A stretch of DNA of 64,000 bases from assembly GCF_902459465.1 (NCBI RefSeq), contig NC_047064.1:22568001-22632000 (forward strand). Reading direction: 5' to 3'. This DNA is from Asterias rubens (Eukaryota). The notes under the pieces are model-generated. The model made no database searches and was not told the DNA's origin. It saw only the letters and a list, made by a program, of their open reading frames with translations. The position numbers were made by a program, and so were the translations under genes. Of this stretch, positions 6,601 to 18,600 are shown piece by piece; position 1 is the first letter of the stretch, and every line of letters begins with the position of its first letter.

Positions 6601-9600
6601 TGCAGATTTTTTAAAAGCTCGTCTGTTTTGACATTTGTGTTTCTGAACCCAAATCAGACTTTTGGAAAGCCGTTATTGTAATGGCCAATCATCAAACCAT
6701 GATCAAATAAGCTTGAACAGCTAGACAACAACTTGAAAGAAAAATGCAGTATAATCCGCTTAACAAAATATTGACAAATAACAGATCTTCGAGCAAGGCA
6801 TTAAACACAACCGTTCCAATGGTTCATTGTTTCCAAGTCCTTTGTTTAAAAGATTAAATCAGAAACGAAAAGAAAAAATAGGCCTAGAAAAGATATTCTA
6901 TCAAGTAATCACACAAAACTAATATTTTACTAACGAGACATCTGCACTAGCAATTGCAAAGGTTATGGGTTCAAATCCCACTCGAGCTTGTGGGTCTTTT
7001 TCTTTGGACTCGGAAAGCACTGAGTGTAGAATGAATAAAAAACAAATCCGTTGTAAGGGCAAAACAAATTTTTATTTAAACAAGTCTCTTAAACACTACT
7101 CTGTCATTTTGCAAGCAAAGTTAATATAAATAGGGTCCTGTATTTTTCCACATCCAGGACATGCAAGAATTAGTTACATTCCCATCATGCACAACTGTTA
7201 TTTCCCAATTTTATACATCCACTCATTTCAAAAACATTCCAAGGTCAGGTCACGCACTGAACAGATTCTACTAAAGTCTTTACAAAACTCACAGTTCTGA
7301 CGTATTTTTGTTAGTCTGACTATTATGAGGTCTACTCATTGTTTAGTGACCTTTAACCTTGATACACGATGGTTGGAATTGGAGAAGCCTATACACAATC
7401 ACATATCGGTAGACTACCTCCATGGTATTATAGACATGATGGAGTAGAATCTAATGACCTTTGTGTATTAAGATTACCGGTACTCCAAGTATTTATAACT
7501 ACTAAGAACACTCAATAATTGTATTTGTAATTCTGAACTTCAAAGCATGTGTGAGCTGAACATGCTCAACAACAATATCCGTGTTAAAACATGAGCTTTA
7601 CGCGCACGCCCAGTGCGGGCTATGTGACGTCACTTAACAACCAAAATAAACTTGTGCAAGTCCTAACATCAATAATGTACTTTACAACCTTTTATCATGT
7701 ACTGACAACAAGACGTGGCTGCCATGGTTGTGCTTGTAGCACAAAGGCGCTCCATAAGTACAACAAACATATTGTTTATACAGGCGTGCCATACACAGGT
7801 CACATGGTCGATGGTCCTGTGGAAAGTTCTGGAATGAAGCAGGAGTAGTATATAATAATAGGCCTAGTTCGTTGTTCCGCATTCTGATAACACAGTGAAC
7901 CGGAAATACATAACAGCTGTTTCACTATGGTGTAAACTGTAATGTTCTTGACCTGAAATTGTTGTCTGTTTAAACTCTTTGGAAGATTTCTACCTCGGCG
8001 ATCTGAAGGACTCCAGTTATTGCTGGATGAGGTAAGTGCTCTAATACTATTAATAGCAGTGTTAATTGGTAATATTTGTTTTATATCATAGAGAAATGAC
8101 TTGCTCTATGGTTATAATTATGTCAAAAATATGCAAAGATCAGTCGGCATGTAGTTGTACATTTGCACTGCTCATTGGGGTCTACAGGGTACGTGAAACA
8201 AGCATTACTTCATGGTAATACCATGGAGCTACATGTAGATGGTACTCACATGGCGCGCGCCTAGTTTCGATCAGCTGAGGTTTCAAAATCAAGGCATAAC
8301 CACACAACTTGTGCAACTTAAAAGGGTGTTTTTCTTCCATTATTCTCTCGCAACTTCGGCCACCAATTAAGTTCAAGTTTTCACAGGTTTGTTATTTTAT
8401 GTGGAGTCATGGAGGTGTACAATGTATGTACACCAAGTGAGAAGGCTGGTCTTTGACAAAGACAAGGTGTCCAGTGCCTTGAAAGACCTTCTTTAATGAA
8501 AAACAGCAACAAGTGATATTCGCTCAAGTTTGTTGATAGAAAGTTTTCAATCAATAAGAAAACTGAGTTCACATGAGATTAAACAGATTTTAATTGTAAA
8601 CAAAGCAATCATTTTGAATACCCTTCCCATTGATCATAAATGCTGGCTAAAAATAGTCTGTTTGTCATTATTTTTGGGAGGGGCAACCAATTAAGTTAGC
8701 AGGGTGGCCAATTCTTAAACCTTGGGAGGGGTGGCTTGCCCTCCAACATTACATGTGTGGAGAACACTGCCTTCTCCAACGCTTTACTGAAAGATTCTCA
8801 ACGGCCTGTATGCCAGATTTGTAATAAATGATCAAGATTGTCCATACAACATGATGATGTTATCATGACGTCACTTCAAATTGAAGCAGATATTGTCCTT
8901 GACTTACAATAGACCAAGTTTCACCTCAATCAAACTTTTGGTTTGGCAGACAACAGCTTTGAAAAGTGCACCTTTAAAGCAAACCATGTGACACATGATG
9001 ACGTCATCAAGCTAAGAATCTACAGATATGTTGCTATTATGCTGAAATTATGTATACCAATTTTGAAACAATTATCATAAACTCTGACACAAGACATCCT
9101 AGTAAATGGGAATTTATAGATATTTTTAATCTGCCGCTAGAGGGCGCACTTATATTTGTTGACGTCATCAGCATTTTTGTTGTTAAACCAGATCTTTGCC
9201 AGACTTGTATTACATGATGGTAAAGTATCAAAAGGTGTACATTTCAACCTAAAATTATGCTTTTTCAAAGCACTTTACAATCACTTCCTGTTTAAACAGA
9301 TCAAAAGGTTTTCCATTTTTGTGAAGTACATAAAGCCCTTTCATGAGGTATAGATTGTCAAAACAGCTTATGTGGTTGAGGATATATTGAACTTATATGA
9401 AGAGATGACAAGAGGAAGCGAAGTATGAAGAAAAAGAGATAAAATAAAATAAAAAATAAGGTGTTCTGGGCTGTTGGCCCGAACGCCTACATGTAATAAA
9501 GAATTGTAATGAGCACATATCCACCCTGCTATTGATAATTATCATTGATAATAAATAAAAATTCATAAATACCTCAGACAGTTTTGCTATTCCGATTGGT

Positions 9601-12600
9601 GGAGGTGCATCACGTGGGGGTGTAAAAATCTTTGATGACCAGTGCTAATAACCAGCTGGCTTCCGCGTGTCGGGCGCGCAAGATTATCACGCGGAACGCA
9701 ATTCATAGCTAATATAGTAACAGAGCGTAATCTAAGTACGCGCGCGTACACACAACCTAGCACATCAAACAGATTCTTCGCAAAATGTTTGAAAAAAATA
9801 TTTCAAACCTCGACATGCTCGACTTTTCAATTGTTAAAGTGTCTATAATTGTATTTTGTTAACGTTTTTGAACAAAAGGGCATTGATGAATGGGAATAAA
9901 AGAGTAGTGATTCGTTTTTAAACGTCCGTTTAAAACCTTGCAGGGTCGTTGCCATGCGATAAAGGCCCTCGCCTTCGGCTTGGGCCTTTATCACATGGCC
10001 GCCGACCCTGCCGGCTTTAAACGCATGTTAAAGAACTCGTCACTACCCTTTTATTCCCTTATTCAAGTATACAATTACCAACATTACGTATGATGAACAT
10101 TACAAACAAGTTTAAATAGCAATCCTTAATTTTCAAACAAAAAATTGCTCAAAATCAACATAAATTATTTACATGGACTTAGGCCCAGAGCCATTGAGGC
10201 AAGTCATGTCATTGAGGCAAGTCAATGATGTGCAATGTTTATTTTGAGTCTGATAAATTTCTTTTATTTTTGTTGGCTATCAAAGTTCACTTACCTATAA
10301 CTTAAAATACAAATGAGATCAATCTTCTACTACAAGCACTATTTTCAAATAAAGCAGTTGAGCTCATTAGGTATGTTTCTTCTCCATTTGACTCTGGCAT
10401 TGTAAAAAAAAAATTGTAAAACTGTTGACCTAAAAGCCCTAAGCTAGATCAAGCATCCCCCAAAAAATATTTTTGGTCTAACATATTTGATATCTGCATT
10501 TGACAAAATTGAGATATTCCCTTAGCATTAAAAGTTACATGTAATACCATGCGTAGCCTTTTCTTTTTCCTTCCCAGATACTTGAAAGATTTAAAATATA
10601 TATATATATTTTTTTTTTCTACAGCAAAGGAGCAAACATTCCTAAGGATGGCCACTGGCAGCAAAGTGATGGAAAAGCTACCTAAGGGTCAAATGTCACA
10701 GCTCAAATGTCAAGCTTGTGATGAAGGGACACAGGCAATTGCAAAATGCATAAAGTGCGATCATTTTCTGTGTCAAGAATGTCAACGAGCCCATCAGCGT
10801 ATGGGCATCTTGAAATCTCACCAAATCCACACCTTGGGGTCTGATTACGAGGAGCAATCCCCCAAGACCTCAGACAAGATGTTCACCGACACCAAAAAGA
10901 AAATCTCCAAAAGTGCTAAAGCAGCTGCTGCAAGCGTCAAAGAGGAGGAGAGGAAACTAGCTGAAGAGGCAGAGCAACCTCATGAGGAAGCAAAGTGGAA
11001 ACTAAACAAATCTATAACGACCTTCCAGTTGATGGAAGAGAAAAAAACACTCCTCCATGCGTATGACGTCGCAGCCTTCTCCAACAACGATATCATCTTG
11101 GCAGATATTAAAAACAAAGTCTTGGTAGTAATCTCAGAAAGCAAGCCCCACCCGGAACAACTAGACATCAGAGGTCTCAAGAATCCTCAACGTATTGCAG
11201 TCAATAAAGATGACCAGTTAATTGTGATTGATCATCAAGAGGTAAAGATCTTCAACAGGCAATATGAATTACTTCGTCGGTTCGAACCAAAAAGGGGGAA
11301 GGTGTCATACAGCACGCTGACTTGTCTTGCAGTGGATGAAAATAATCATATAGCCGTTGGGTGCAGAAACAAGGCGAAGGGCCTGGAGGAGATATCTCTT
11401 TATGAACCAAATGGAGACTTAATAAGAAGGCTACTTGCTTCTGGGATAGGTAACTTTTTGATGATTCAAACACAGTTGTGCATCTACTGGAACGGTGACA
11501 AACTGCACACGATGGACTACAACGAAAAAACAGTGCGTTCAACGAATATCGGTCGATCCGGTAAAACCCCCTTTCACCCTACGGGTATGTGTTTTATTAA
11601 GGGTATCGGTTTGTACATTGCAACGCGACACTCTTCCCCTTCTGAACCAGGCGAGATTCATCAGCTTTATCCTGCTGATCAGCAAACAGAGTGTGTTATA
11701 CAAGACTGTCAACATCCACAAGGCATGACAGTCACGCCAGATGGTCAATTGGTTGTGGCGTGTGAAGATTCTCTCAAAATCTTTCACAGATGGCCGTCCA
11801 GTCTCAAGGATCTCTTTGTTCAGGAAGAAGTCCCAACAAATCAGGATCATGTTGACCCCAGGCCACAGGGAACTTTCCAGTGTTCATCCGACACTTCCAA
11901 CTGTGTCATTTGTAGTGTCCACATCAAACAATCAACCTTCTTCAAGAGCAACAAGAAAGATACCCAAATAGAGCATAAGACAATTGGTCATATCACCTGC
12001 ACCACCACTAATCTCGTCTATCTCATATCTTGCAAAAAATGTGGTTTACAATATGTAGGTCAAACAAAAAATACACTCAAGAAGCGTTTCTATAAACACA
12101 GATCCACAGTCAATGGCAAGAAGGACACAATAGGAGAACACTTCAGTCAGAGCGATCACTCTATTACTGACATGATTTTACAAGGCATTGAGGCACTAGG
12201 ATTAAGAGGAAACACTAGAAAGGTTCGCACGGAAGAGGAGACAAAGTGGAAAAAAAGGCTTAACACCATAACACCCTCTGGTCTGAACAAAAAGTTGAAG
12301 GACTAAAACATTGTCTTCACCTTCTCCTTTTAGTCTGCCTCGTTCATTATTTAACTACTTTTCTGTCCCTCTTCCCACCATTGATTTTGTTCTTTGTGTA
12401 TCCTATCTCCTGTGACCAAAAAAACCTCTTCCTAAGTAACAAAACTTTGCATCATGTGGATAAATAGGAAGAAACTAAAAAATAAATATTTATTAATACC
12501 GGGACAGTTTATCCAGTCTGATTGGTCCAGAGGCCATCACGTGGAGGCGTGTAAGACATCAGTAAGAAGGCGTGACAGAGGAGCTTATGTGTGGCGTTAT

Positions 12601-15600
12601 TTTATGCATAACACAATCAACATAAAACAAGAACTATGCGCACATACGCATAACCATTGAGCGCCAATGCCATTGTTGCGGTTTAAAAAAAAATTGATTT
12701 ATTTTACAGATTTCACTTATGAAATCTGTAAAACAAATCAATTGTTTTGCATAACTTTATTATGCTTTTTAACAAAAGGGCATTTATGAATGGGAATAAC
12801 AACGACGCCCTCATAAGCAATCAATAGTCGCGACTCCGACAGTAGTCACCCAGACTTAGACTGAACCTACCTGTGTCTCAACCATCTTGAGACGTTCCTT
12901 GAGTTTGTTATTCTCCTCATTGAGTCTTGCAATCTCAGCATGGAGAAGTTGCTCTCCTTCTCCAGCCATAGGGTCAAGACGCTTCATCTCAAAGGTCGGC
13001 TTGCTCGTCACCTTTAGAGAAAGTCAACAACAAAAGGGACTTTGATATTAAGCAGCTAAATTATATTCATAGTTTTAGTGTTTTGTGGTGTATTATGTAA
13101 ATGAATTTATTCCCATTTTATTTTACAACTTGCATGTAGTTAGTGTAAAATTTCAAACATTTTGGGAAACTAGAATATTAATTTCAAGTTTGACTGAGAA
13201 TACAATGTATGTGACAAATTGATATCAACCTTTGGTTTGTAATGAAATCACTGCAAAGTAAAAGTTCTTTTCAAGCCGTCACAGGAACAAACAATTGCTG
13301 GAACTTATTATGAATAGTTATTCTTTTCCTTTTTTGCATGTTTTTACATATCTCCTCTTTTATCTATTATAATACAAATGTAAAATATTTGATTCAAGTG
13401 TATCATGTGTATTGTCAGAATTGTGGCTTAAATTGTGGCATAAGTTTGGCTAAATTTTAGATGGCCTAGAGGTGTGATATGTGATGCTAAAGGGCATGCC
13501 GTAACCGCTGGTTCAGCAATTGGCCCTCAGTTGTTTTGTTTGGCAATTGTCACTAAGATGACAATGTAGTATTGCTTTAGTAGGAATAAACCATTTGCCA
13601 GTACATTTTTAGGTAAGACTATAGTGGACAGTTGCTATGTCAAATGGTTCGGGGCAAGCGTTTGTATAGCAACCTCCAGATGAGCAAACCCTGGTACCAA
13701 TGTGCCTTACACATCAATTTTGAATTGTGTAAAGGTGTTCACCGTCTCTTAGATAACTAGGCAAAAGCTTGCCCCAAATCATATGACATAGCAACTGTCT
13801 CAATAATCTGAGGAATTCAAATTTAAGTGGTAACTTGTGATCAAGCACATTATTGTTCAAGACAATATACTAAAATCCAACTTGCAAGTGGCTTATTGCT
13901 CAGAGCTTGTATTGTAAGAATTAAAGGAAAGGTTTACATTTGGTTAAATAACTATATTAAAATTATTGGCAACACAAACTTTTGATAAGAAGACTCCAGC
14001 AGCGTTTGATAGCAAAAAGCATTTTGAGAAATATCTCCTGCTTCGAAGTATATGTAATGTGGTTCTTTGAAAAAATAACAGTTTTTATGCCCAAATTTGT
14101 AATCTGAGCAGATAGACTGTGTATTCCAATCAGCGATTATACTTCCTGCATCAACATATTAAACGCTCAGGATTTGGTGATACTCAAAGATTTGACCACC
14201 TTTCGAAATAAAATTGTCAGATTTAGTTTGTTAGTGTATCTACATTTAATCAAACAGTTGGTTTAGGCTTTTAAACACTGCTGAACAACTATTTTGAATT
14301 AATTGCACTAGTGAAGTAAATAAGATATTGGTAAATATTCTCCGCTTGTATCTGTAATTGAACTTTTAATAAGGTGCCTAGTCATACTAACATGTACCTC
14401 AATCTTAAGACCTAATCATGGGAATTTTTGATGTATTGCTGAATCTTTGTAAACACATTTTAAAACAATAAATTAAAAGTGAAGCCTGAGATTTTATCTC
14501 TCAATTATTATTTAGTGTGAAGAGGACTAGGTTGGTTGTGACACAGGTCTGCCATTTTCATCTTTGAGAGGGCAAGGCCATTTCATCTTTGAGATGGCAA
14601 GGCTATTCATCTTTGAGATGGCAAGGCTATTTCATCTTTGAGAGGGCAAGTTCATTTCATCTTTGAGAGGGCAAGGCCATTTCATCTTAGAGAGGGCAAT
14701 GTCATAGGCCATGAGAGGGCAAGGCCATTTCATCTTTGAGAGGGCAAAGTCATTTCATTTTTGAGTGGACAAGGTCATTTCATCTTTGAGAGGGCAAGGT
14801 CATTTCATCTTTGAGAGGGCAAGGCCATTTCATCTTTGAGAGGGCAAGGCCATTTCATCTTTGAGAGGGCAAGGCCATTTCATCTTTGAGAGGGCAAGGC
14901 TATTTCATCTTTGAGATGGCAAGGCCATTTCATCTTTGAGATGGCAAGGCTATTTCATCTTTGAGAGGGCAAGGCCATTTCATCTTTGAGAGGGCAAGGC
15001 TATTTCATCTTTGAGAGGGCAAGGCCATTTCATCTTTGAGATGGCAAGGCTATTTCATCTTTGAGATGGCAAGGCCATTTCATCTTTGAGAGAGCAAGGC
15101 CATTTCATCTTTGAGAGGGCAAGGCCATTTCATCTTTGAGAGGGCAAGGTCATTTCATCTTTGAGTGGGCAAGGCCATTTCATCTTTGAGAGGGCAAGGT
15201 CATTTCATCTTTGAGTGGGTAAGGCCATTTCATCTTTGAGAGGGCAAGGCCATTTCATCTTAGAGAGGGCAATGCCATAGGCCATGAGAGGACAAGGCCA
15301 TTTCATCTTTGAGAGGGCAAGGTCATTTCATCTTTGAGTGGGCAAGGTCATTTCATCTTTGAGAGGGCAAGGTCATTTCATCTTTGAGTGGGCAAGGCCA
15401 TTTCATCTTTGAGAGGGCAAGGCCATTTCATCTATGAGAGGGCAAGGCTATTTCATCTTTGAGATGGCAAGGCCATTTCATCTTTGAGATGGCAAGGCTA
15501 TTTCATCTTTGAGAGGGCAAGGCCATTTCATCTTTGAGAGGGCAAGGCTATTTCATCTTTGAGAGGGCAAGGCCATTTCATCTTTGAGATGGCAAGGCTA

Positions 15601-18600
15601 TTTCATCTTTGAGATGGCAAGGCCATTTCATCTTTGAGAGAGCAAGGCCATTTCATCTTTGCGAGGGCAAGGCCATTTCATCTTTGAGAGGGCAAGGTCA
15701 TTTCATCTTTGAGTGGGCAAGGTCATTTCATCTTTGAGAGGGCAAGGTCATTTCATCTTTGAGTGGGCAAGGCCATTTCATCTTTGAGAGGGCAAGGTCA
15801 TTTCATCTTTGAGTGGGCAAGGCCATTTCATCTTTGAGAGGGCAAGGCCATTTCATCTTAGAGAGGGCAATGCCATAGGCCATGAGAGGGCAAGGCCATT
15901 TCATCTTTGAGAGGGCAAGGTCATTTCATCTTTGAGTGGGCAAGCTCATTTCATCTTTGAGAGGGCAAGGTCATTTCATCTTTGAGTGGGCAAGGCCATT
16001 TCATCTTTTAGAGGGCAAGGCCATTTCATCTTTGAGTGGGCAAGGTCATTTCATCTTTGAGTGGGCAAGGTCAATTCATCTTTGAGAGGGCAAGGTCATT
16101 TCATCTTTGAGAGGGCAAGGCCATTTCTTCTTTGAGAGGGCAAGGCAATTTCTTCTTCGAGAGAACAAAGGGCACACATGATACACATGTCCAGTTGGAA
16201 ATCTTCAATTACTTCATGTACGTGGGAAGCTTTTGAAGGAGCACCAAGGCCAAGACAACAGACACCATAGCTTCTGTGTCTTTCCAAGCCTGCATTGTGA
16301 ACTTTCAATCAGTAAAATAAAAATGACACTTACTGACTTTCCGGAAAACTGACTCTCTTCAAAGTCTGCAATCATTTCTATCAGTTCCCTGGGGGGAAAA
16401 AAAGACACAGTTAAGATGTTAAACCTCCACATCCTGTTGTCACTAAAGTAGAGTGACTTGTTTCTGCATCTGCTGATTGACTGTACTCAACGTTCTGTTG
16501 GACTATCACTATACATGTTCAATATAAAGGTGTTGTATTTATTAGGGGGAATGTTCAAAACAACATGCTGACTTGTCTTGCAAGTGATGAAAATAATCTT
16601 AAAGCTGTGGGGTACAGGAATACGACGCAGGGCCTGGCGGAGATATCTCTTTATGAACCAAATGAATCCTTAATATGATTCCCTGGCAGGAACATTTAGA
16701 GAATTACCGATTTTCCAGTTCAGATATATCAGCCATGAGCTTGAGATGCCATTTCTCTGCCTGTTGGAACAGCTGACGAAGTAATAAGACATTGGTGTGG
16801 GCTGTGTTAATAAGTTCAGACTCCACTTCACCTCGGACTACAGCCTCAAGACCATCAAGCATCTCAACCACTTCATCAGCAGTAAAAGTGTCTTCGGTCA
16901 ACCTGAGAGATTAAATAATAACATTGATTGAATGACTTTAGAACCATTTCACTTCATTTATTAACTCTGGCTGTGAAGCCAGGGACTCTAAGAAAGATGA
17001 ATTTAATCAAACTTAGTACTAGCCATAAAAACAATTGAGACAAAACAACGAAAACAATTTTGATTTTAATGTGGGATGAAAACTTCACAGAAATATTTCA
17101 GGGAAAACTACACAATCAGGTTAGGACATAAAACTCACCTTGTGCCCCCGGCAGGAATCAAACCGAGAGACTAAAAAGTAAGAAAATACATAACTACATC
17201 AACCCGACCACCCAACTTAGTATAGAGCGCCCTCAGGTCAAGCATTCAATGTTTGAGCACAAACACAATACTGCCGGACTTGTCCAGGCATGAGTTTATA
17301 GGCCTAATACTAAAATCACTACCCTTGGCCTTCAGTCCAGTGTTAAATTCAAGCATTGGTTTAATGTTTAACCCTGTATGAACCCCTCAGAATCACTGAA
17401 ACTAACAACCAAATTGATTCTGATTAAGCTTAATAATGATAATAATAATGGATATTTATATAGCGCCCATCCATGTACATACTGGCATGCTCCTGGGCAC
17501 TGAACAATTAAAAAAAATTTTTTATAATCCATACAGTTAAAGGTAGTGGACACTTGGTAATTGCTCAAAATAGTTATTAGCATAAAACCTTACTTGGTAA
17601 CAAGTAATGGGGAGAGGTTGATAGTATAAAACATTCCTCTGAAGTAACGTAGTTTTCGAGAAAGAAGTAATTTTCCACGAATTTTATTTCAAGACCTCAA
17701 GTTTAGAATTTGAGGTCTCGAAATCAAGCATCTGAATGCACACAACTTCGTGTGACAAGGGTGTTTTTTCTTTCATAGTTATCTCGCAACTCCAATGACC
17801 AATCGAGCTCAAATTTTCACAGGTTTGTTATTTTATGCATATGTTGAGATACACCAAGTGAGAAGACTTGTCTTTGACAACTACCGATAGTGTCCACTGA
17901 CTTTAAAAATGTAATAAATGCAGTATTTGTACACAACAATCCATCAAGCTAAGCATAATTTCACGTCTCTGCTAACTGTAAGCAAAAAATAGGCGCCTTT
18001 CAGTAGGGTATTCCGCACTCAAGCATATTTCTAAAGTTGGCAGGGAATTTTACTTGTGCTCATGCATACTTCACCTTACTAGGCATTATTCGCTTACAAA
18101 GCTTGAGCAGAAATTCGGCCCTTGTCCTACAAGCAAAGAATGGTGATCACAAGCGCAGAATTTGGCGGTAAGCAGAGCTATGAAATTGGACCCAGCTGAT
18201 CACTGCTACTCCTGTAAATTCCACATAACAGCCGAGTTACCTGCTGTCTTTGAGATCCTGAAAGCAACCTTCAACACCACGTAGATTCTGGTTGCGTTTG
18301 TAGCGATTGAACCTCATGTAGTTCACCAGCGATTCCTGATGGTGGTCACTCACTCCCAAAGCACTCGCCTAAAAAATAGGAAAAATTATGTTAATATTGA
18401 TCTTTTGATTAAAAAGCAGCTTGAAGTGATAACCCAACAACCACTGGACTGGATAAATGTGCTAGCGCTCTACCAATCGAGCTATCTAGCCCTATTTTGG
18501 CAGTCTCTTTGTTTTGTCAATATCTTTGTTGATGTGCCAGTCAGAAACATTACCAGTCGTGTAGCCAAGAACCAAACCCAAGTTTACGATACAACCTTGG

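Follow-up and report, generated by a model that had tools for sequence, protein, structure and literature searches.

Whether a piece of a retroelement that has become the C-terminus of a TRIM-like host protein still serves there as an enzyme is the question raised by a locus of the starfish Asterias rubens. The locus lies in a stretch of 64,000 nucleotides (hereafter the window; assembly GCF_902459465.1, contig NC_047064.1, positions 22,568,001 to 22,632,000 of the forward strand), in which a single-exon gene joins an NHL beta-propeller to the GIY-YIG endonuclease of a Penelope-like element (PLE). The explanation preferred here, at a probability of roughly 60%, is that the gene encodes a domesticated, catalytically competent PLE nuclease, which is carried by a TRIM-like recognition scaffold and evolves under diversifying selection.

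The gene is read from the plus strand and is contained in an uninterrupted open reading frame (ORF) of 585 amino acids at 10549-12306. Its annotated product (P0001), whose residue numbers are used below, has 552 amino acids and starts at the second ATG, at 10648 (MATGSK); the first in-frame ATG, at 10549, is probably located 5' of the transcribed region. The coding sequence (10648..12306, stop codon included) is a single exon according to the ORF list, the database product, the one-exon orthologue of Asterias amurensis and contigs at 10626-12793. From the N-terminus, the protein is composed of a B-box, a short coiled coil, a six-bladed NHL propeller, a PLE-derived linker, a zinc knuckle and a GIY-YIG endonuclease. 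On the 585-amino-acid ORF, Pfam detects the B-box, the NHL repeat and the GIY-YIG domain, and finds no RING; the starfish paralogues possess B-boxes and, in most cases, a RING. The single B-box zinc finger occupies approximately residues 21-60 (10708..10827, plus strand; matching ANCHR-like_BBOX / zf-B_box at residues 51-94 of the longer ORF). The propeller, delimited with the help of AlphaFold, Foldseek and the Pfam NHL model, covers approximately residues 117-381 (10996..11790, plus strand) and ends in the strand LKIFHR. In the AlphaFold model of residues 100-552, which has a predicted local distance difference test score (pLDDT) of 84, a complete propeller is followed by a disordered linker and then by the nuclease domain. 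The best Foldseek matches of the propeller are the NHL domains of Brat, Thin, TRIM2/3 and TRIM71/LIN-41, with template modelling (TM) scores of 0.67-0.77 over about 285 columns, these targets being NHL-only chains. The A. rubens genome contains more than 100 B-box/NHL paralogues encoded by single exons; they share no more than 45% identity with the product, and some of them are broken. The host gene belongs to this starfish-expanded single-exon TRIM-NHL family.

The motifs VY, YVG, KKRF, YKH, EHF, R-x3-E-x2-W and GLN had been named in the first-pass annotation of the window as those of a GIY-YIG nuclease, and every residue is found where it was placed. The core (11998..12291, plus strand), which is supported by Pfam PF01541, by a conservation table and by AlphaFold with Foldseek (I-TevI), contains C451, Y458, C462, C465, Y469, G471, R480, H484, H498, H504, E531, W534 and N547. 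The codons of the GIY-YIG residues are located at 12019-21 (Y458), 12052-60 (Y469 and G471), 12085-7 (R480), 12238-40 (E531) and 12286-8 (N547); H484 is the histidine of YKH, H498 that of EHF, and W534 is likewise among the matched motif residues. The catalytic residues Y458, Y469, R480, H484, E531 and N547 are all kept in both Asterias species. Within the core, C462 and C465 are located between Y458 and Y469, with H498 and H504 downstream, and each member of this CCHH set is conserved in 96-100% of 140 PLE endonucleases. A second set of putative zinc ligands, the linker knuckle C412-x6-C419-x2-C422-x2-H425 (11881..11922, plus strand; the cysteine cluster CSSDTSNCVIC at 11881-11913), is recognized by its conservation in PLE endonucleases, C412, C419 and C422 being 93-99% conserved among the same 140 and retained in both Asterias species. 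Its spacing had been described as C-x-C-x2-C and has to be corrected to C-x6-C-x2-C for A. rubens and C-x5-C-x2-C for A. amurensis.

Canonical PLE endonucleases are distinguished by two cysteines between GIY and YIG, which contribute to the CCHH set, and by catalytic R, H, E and N; a linker knuckle of the form CX2-5CxxC is described for the Neptune, Nematis and Naiad types and is absent from Penelope/Poseidon (PMC8557442). The knuckle of A. rubens is one residue outside the published x2-5 range. Taken together, linker knuckle and CCHH partly point to Neptune or Nematis and would speak for exclusion of Penelope/Poseidon and Hydra as defined in the same study. One PLE protein, when purified, cleaves both DNA strands, and mutation of the Tyr or Gly of YIG abolishes cleavage (PMC11167929); the equivalent residues of the starfish protein, Y469 and G471, are present. 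Judged by this residue set, the captured nuclease is predicted to be catalytically competent.

The origin of the tail from a PLE is shown by several lines of comparison. With phmmer, 5488 relatives were obtained at E<=0.001 among 1.84 billion cluster representatives, and in 105 of the best 150 the nuclease is preceded by PLE sequence from the reverse transcriptase (RT) side, those scanned having the architecture RVT_1 plus GIY-YIG; upstream of the junction in the window gene, an NHL propeller is found instead of RT. Six-frame matches to the 172-residue tail number at least 150 in the 417.6-Mb A. rubens genome, and in a tree built on 136 columns the tail is placed inside an echinoderm PLE clade with a Shimodaira-Hasegawa-like approximate likelihood ratio test (SH-aLRT) value of 95. 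Pfam GIY-YIG (PF01541) is scored at 25.6 bits against a gathering cut-off of 22.6. The AlphaFold model of residues 381-552 (pLDDT 89, predicted TM score 0.80) is best matched in Foldseek by the catalytic domain of I-TevI (TM 0.78, root mean square deviation 1.9 A), followed by T4 EndoII and UvrC; the E-values are all above 0.001, though the top ranks are all GIY-YIG nucleases. When solved structures were searched by sequence, the tail matched only T4 EndoII, and weakly (E=0.18). SLX1 and ANKLE1, to which the tail might alternatively have been related, are neither among the solved-structure sequence matches nor among the Foldseek matches listed, and the tail groups with PLE endonucleases.

The junction itself is remarkably legible. 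The first-pass annotation had the NHL strand ACEDSLKIFH running directly into RWPSSLKDLFV, and this is what the ORF contains, the R codon starting at 11788. Alignment with paralogue ends and with a PLE family, termed family A, places host sequence up to approximately H/R and PLE sequence from approximately R/W within K-I-F-H-R-W-P-S (11773..11796, plus strand). All 19 paralogue C-termini that were checked end in '...SVQIY(Q/H)(H/R)(E/V)*', one to three residues past the equivalent of the last NHL strand; the paralogue L034, for instance, ends in 'DSVQIYHRV*', and at the same place the window gene has 'DSLKIFHRW' and continues with PSSL. Because the paralogues checked all stop right after that strand, the join lies no more than one or two codons from the native stop of the TRIM-NHL family, and the whole propeller is retained. 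The break on the host side, which had not been commented on before, is as exact as that on the PLE side.

On the PLE side, homology to the 931-amino-acid ORF of family A starts at its YRRPPSLRDLIV (RRPPSL) and extends to its last residue. The linker (11788..11865, plus strand), about 25 amino acids long, carries the motif RRPxxL(R/K)DxxV, the consensus of 56 PLE tails starting with RRPxNLRDxLV; it is predicted to be flexible, some 16 residues (model residues 287-302) having pLDDT values below 50. The stop codon TAA (12304..12306, plus strand) is likewise inherited from the PLE, as it aligns with that of family A (window 12290-12460 against 1995-2200 of family A locus L012). Beyond it, blastn against family A loci reveals a remnant of the PLE 3' untranslated region (UTR) at 12307..12410 (plus strand), which now forms the start of the 3'UTR of the chimeric gene: 12326-12403 is 73% identical to the sequence just 3' of the family A stop (E=1.6e-5), so that about 100 nt of the PLE 3'UTR are retained. 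That the post-RT module was captured whole, as initially proposed, is borne out by this alignment from linker motif through last residue and stop to 3'UTR. Since PLE stop and 3'UTR are still present, the tail represents the 3' end of a 5'-truncated PLE copy, and 5' truncation is the usual outcome of target-primed reverse transcription. No hammerhead ribozyme and no other credible RNA family was found in 9500-14000 with Rfam at a permissive threshold (E<=1). Farther along the 3'UTR region, 12442-12620 and 12740-12800 contain pieces of further dispersed repeats, at least two in number, which recur in many copies across the genome at 74-98% identity.

The capture predates the divergence of the two Asterias species. 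Among the at least 150 genomic tails, the nearest is 59-60% identical in amino acids and 72% in nucleotides. Family A (L012, L018, L020, L029), the closest living relative of the captured tail, is separated from it by a synonymous divergence (dS) of 0.52 and a nonsynonymous divergence (dN) of 0.32; its own copies are 99.5% identical over 2.37 kb, and the family has probably been active recently. In A. amurensis, the orthologue P0002 (628 amino acids, 'TRIM71-like') has the same architecture in a single exon and occupies the same position, within an intron of the same Leu_zip (LZTFL1-like) gene and antisense to it, and the flanks are collinear between the species at 92-97% identity. As the fusion is common to the syntenic site in both species, the capture is older than their split. 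The annotated proteins of Patiria and Acanthaster yielded no orthologue, the best matches being 35-38% identical and lacking the nuclease. A recent neutral insertion can be ruled out by the distance to the nearest PLE family, which is far from the near-complete identity to an active family that a recent event would have left. The initial proposal of either a functional enzyme or a very recent fusion is thereby narrowed: divergence and shared synteny contradict recency, and function is favoured by the constraint on the nuclease core.

The junction is crossed by single contigs that map to the gene and come from three runs, each of a different study (X5, 10626-12793; X2, 10985-12640; X6, 10985-12034). 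Immediately upstream, at 10176-10569, X5, X6 and X19 have no coverage, and X2 has a depth of 6-11 as opposed to about 60 on the gene; elsewhere the depth is very uneven and resembles that of transcriptome assemblies. The transcript 5' end is hidden by 10585-10625, which is masked as repeat. The case for a discrete transcript spanning the fusion is good but not final.

Comparison of A. rubens with A. amurensis allows the forces acting on the reading frame to be judged. The 548 aligned codons differ at 136 nucleotides and contain no stops; when substitutions were placed at random with the observed transition/transversion ratio, the frame was left open in 0.4% of simulations (P = 0.004). Three internal indels of 234, 3 and 6 nt are all in frame, and one contig of run X6 carries an additional in-frame 6-nt deletion, which may be an allele. 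The largest, a deletion of 78 amino acids relative to A. amurensis at 10851..10852 (plus strand), is evident from the protein alignment and from a break in the blastn alignment at 10851, contigs at 10714-11014 being gapless across the site; it removes the second B-box together with a portion of the coiled coil, so that B-box 2 is found in A. amurensis only. Retention of every catalytic residue and zinc ligand had been claimed from the outset, and all 22 positions with at least 92% conservation among the 140 PLE endonucleases are in fact kept in both species. Interspecies changes affect 1 of 38 columns conserved to at least 70%, whereas 35 of the 100 variable ones are changed (Fisher p = 2.7e-5).

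Around this conserved core, the rate of change is high. The ratio dN/dS is 0.93 for B-box and coiled coil, 1.10 for the NHL propeller and 3.85 for the PLE-derived part (dS 0.037, dN 0.140; bootstrap 95% 1.9-13.5; Fisher p = 0.008); for a canonical RING/B-box/NHL paralogue (P0222), whose 1:1 orthologue is unambiguous, it is 0.44. This paralogue replaced P0220 as the control, the latter being part of a tandem array with many 85-90% copies and hence of ambiguous orthology. In the PLE-derived part, 51 of 55 differences are nonsynonymous, compared with an expected share of 0.75 (binomial p = 0.0009). The coding 3' part is 89.7% identical between the species, the flanking intron 92-97%. Two places concentrate the interspecies changes: the helix surrounding the catalytic Glu (528-537) and the vicinity of the zinc knuckle. 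The sequence comparisons describe a conserved catalytic and zinc-binding core within a rapidly changing surface, the non-core residues of the nuclease domain evolving faster than neutral DNA. One-sided gene conversion from PLE copies was considered as a source of the high divergence and is unlikely, given the low dS and derived changes in both lineages (9 and 6 polarised) without PLE-like runs. Of the coding variants listed from public runs, 15 of 17 are nonsynonymous; codon 263 (11434-11435, NHL part) shows three replacements among these runs, of L by F, H and P, and is possibly a hypervariable position of the propeller.

The window gene is not the only one of its kind. Among the best 150 relatives of the tail, three more clusters have an NHL propeller joined to a PLE knuckle and endonuclease right after the last NHL strand, the PLE part beginning about 25 residues later than in the window gene. 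In A. amurensis, XP_071807548.1 (P0009) carries two endonuclease modules; its A. rubens orthologue (C22:4067528-4069222, plus strand; L052:1456-3201) is open, 582 amino acids long and 77% identical, with a dN/dS of 1.8 and many in-frame indels. The propeller of this second Asterias fusion looks unrelated to that of the window gene, and its two tandem modules of PLE knuckle and GIY-YIG both lack catalytic residues; in P0009, module 1 carries the replacements G471D and R480Q, and module 2 carries E531Q and N547L. Patiria miniata XP_038062839.1 (P0017; L055:4840-5886) combines RING, NHL and endonuclease, with R480C and E531K, and Branchiostoma lanceolatum CAH1251664.1 (L056:5906-6583) an NHL 'TRIM3' and endonuclease, with R480K; in either case the junction is within one exon. 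The window propeller is closer to more than 100 unfused paralogues than to that of the second Asterias fusion, and the amphioxus endonuclease stands elsewhere in the tree relative to the window tail. Independent captures are likely but, with a tree of 136 columns, not proven. PLE endonucleases are also found on proteins of other kinds: in P. miniata XP_038053849.1 (P0038) on a MUL1-like protein, which groups with the window endonuclease at SH-aLRT 99, possibly by long-branch attraction, and in Anguilla anguilla XP_035281912.1 (P0021) as two modules on a dynamin-family GTPase.

These relatives bear directly on one alternative, namely that the fusion gene is functional and its captured domain a zinc-dependent module for binding nucleic acid or protein, not a nuclease, which could act as a decoy in competition with PLE endonucleases. 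The zinc ligands are retained in the other NHL-endonuclease fusions with loss of catalytic residues, P0009 and its A. rubens orthologue have stayed open between species despite that loss, and the clustering of changes at 528-537 and at the zinc knuckle would suit selection on a binding surface. What makes this alternative improbable for the window gene is the preservation of all six catalytic positions in the two species against a background of change at one third of the variable positions; pure binding needs no catalytic residues, and the sister fusions demonstrate that these are lost when unneeded.

Somewhat less probable again is a neutral chimera, in which a PLE tail landed in frame on a dispensable TRIM-NHL paralogue and the ORF simply has not yet been broken. 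With more than 100 paralogues, some of them broken, and abundant PLE tails, chance fusions are to be expected; dN/dS values near 1 for B-box and NHL, substitutions spread evenly across codon positions and the loss of B-box 2 in A. rubens would all be compatible with such an origin. Neutral decay is unlikely, however, because the conserved nuclease columns have been spared, and it is further contradicted by the improbability of an open frame at the observed number of substitutions, by the in-frame nature of every indel, by the nonsynonymous excess of the PLE part over the expectation for random mutation and by the probable transcription of the gene as a discrete unit. An artefact of assembly or annotation, joining an NHL gene to an adjacent PLE fragment, deserves hardly any credence: such fragments are very common in the A. 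rubens genome and often absorbed by automatic gene models, but here the fusion is within a single uninterrupted ORF, recurs at the syntenic site in the independent A. amurensis assembly and is crossed by single contigs from three independent runs.

For a domesticated, active nuclease on a TRIM-like scaffold, the following course of events is proposed. Insertion of a 5'-truncated PLE would have displaced the host stop codon in frame. The NHL propeller, which recognises RNA or protein in Brat, LIN-41 and TRIM2/3 and binds RNA in Brat, LIN-41, Mei-P26 and NHL-2, would supply target recognition, and the captured nuclease, tethered by the flexible linker, would act as the effector. Fast evolution would reflect genetic conflict with viruses or retroelements, possibly with PLEs themselves, which are a candidate target because the captured domain could recognise PLE targets.

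Several observations weigh against this proposal. Intact active-site residues are no proof of nuclease activity, and E472 of the YVGET motif is replaced by Q in A. rubens, at a position only 66% conserved among PLE endonucleases. The dN/dS above 1 in the PLE part depends on about four synonymous differences in 168 codons, and the values near 1 for the B-box and NHL parts would by themselves be compatible with neutral drift. The missing B-box 2 and the shortened coiled coil of A. rubens could mark incipient decay. The gene is known only from two closely related species, so that the time under selection has been short; none of the public runs is recorded as RNA, and the contigs are strandless. 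An immune or conflict role is one that we only infer.

Transposases, integrases, gag and env provide well-known examples of transposable-element protein domains captured by hosts. For a domesticated PLE endonuclease, full-text searches returned no report, and a study of rotifer PLEs found no exapted PLE ORFs (PMC3846280). It is tentatively suggested, as a wider idea that is more doubtful than the proposal for the window gene itself, that TRIM-like NHL-propeller genes of deuterostomes acquired PLE endonuclease tails at the stop codon on repeated, independent occasions, giving rise to a fast-evolving 'sensor plus nuclease' class with antiviral or anti-retroelement function, of which the window gene would be the member still catalytically intact and the first domesticated PLE protein domain. 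Since NHL-endonuclease fusions recur in Asterias, Patiria and amphioxus, this idea can be tested by comparison. The locus in its own right offers a clean and datable capture, with readable insertion scars, sharing between two species and a conserved catalytic core under a changing surface. If the nuclease is active, an effector that cuts nucleic acids directly would be tied to the TRIM-NHL families that have expanded and evolve fast in marine invertebrates, and the gene would be a natural parallel to TRIMCyp.

As to the surroundings, the Leu_zip (LZTFL1-like) gene runs in the opposite direction and houses the chimeric gene within one of its introns, and a minus-strand ORF at 12856-13011 rich in leucine-zipper-like heptads fits an exon of that gene. 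About 770 extra nt are present in A. amurensis at window position 12799/12800. A tandem array at 14551-16163 (25-nt unit, 64.8 copies, 90% matches) has a syntenic counterpart in A. amurensis. In the same host-gene region, 16544-16675 (plus strand) is a short decayed NHL-coding copy with 66% protein identity to residues 216-259 of the product and about 85% DNA identity to the A. amurensis gene.

With canonical endonuclease-bearing PLEs (cd10442 type, Neptune/Nematis-type linker) the window gene shares the RRPxxLRDxxV linker motif, the Cys knuckle, CCHH, the catalytic Y/Y/R/H/E/N, the I-TevI-like fold, the PLE stop codon and the PLE 3'UTR. It differs from them in lacking RT, the N-terminal PLE domains, the pseudo-long terminal repeat and the hammerhead ribozyme, and in that the captured tail is a single copy at a syntenic host locus, is joined to an NHL propeller, has a knuckle spacing of x6 instead of x2-5 and evolves with a dN/dS above 1, whereas purifying selection would be expected for an active PLE. 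The host nucleases SLX1 and ANKLE1 have in common with it a GIY-YIG fold in a eukaryotic host protein; there is no detectable specific relationship, CCHH and linker knuckle being PLE-specific. A B-box followed by a six-bladed NHL propeller is shared with the TRIM-NHL proteins Brat, LIN-41/TRIM71, TRIM2, TRIM3, TRIM32/Thin and Mei-P26, from which the starfish protein is distinguished by the missing RING, the possession, in A. rubens, of one B-box only and the nuclease after the propeller. A precedent in design is TRIM5-CypA (TRIMCyp) of owl monkeys and macaques, where, in two independent lineages, a LINE-1-mediated retrocopy of cyclophilin A replaced or followed the C-terminal domain of TRIM5. 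Both cases combine a TRIM scaffold with a new C-terminal module acquired by retrotransposition, recurrent similar fusions and fast evolution. The module of TRIM5-CypA derives from a host cDNA and binds capsid, whereas that of the starfish gene is a piece of the retroelement itself and a predicted enzyme; and while the host recognition domain was replaced in TRIM5-CypA, it has been kept in the starfish fusion, for which an antiviral role is so far only proposed.

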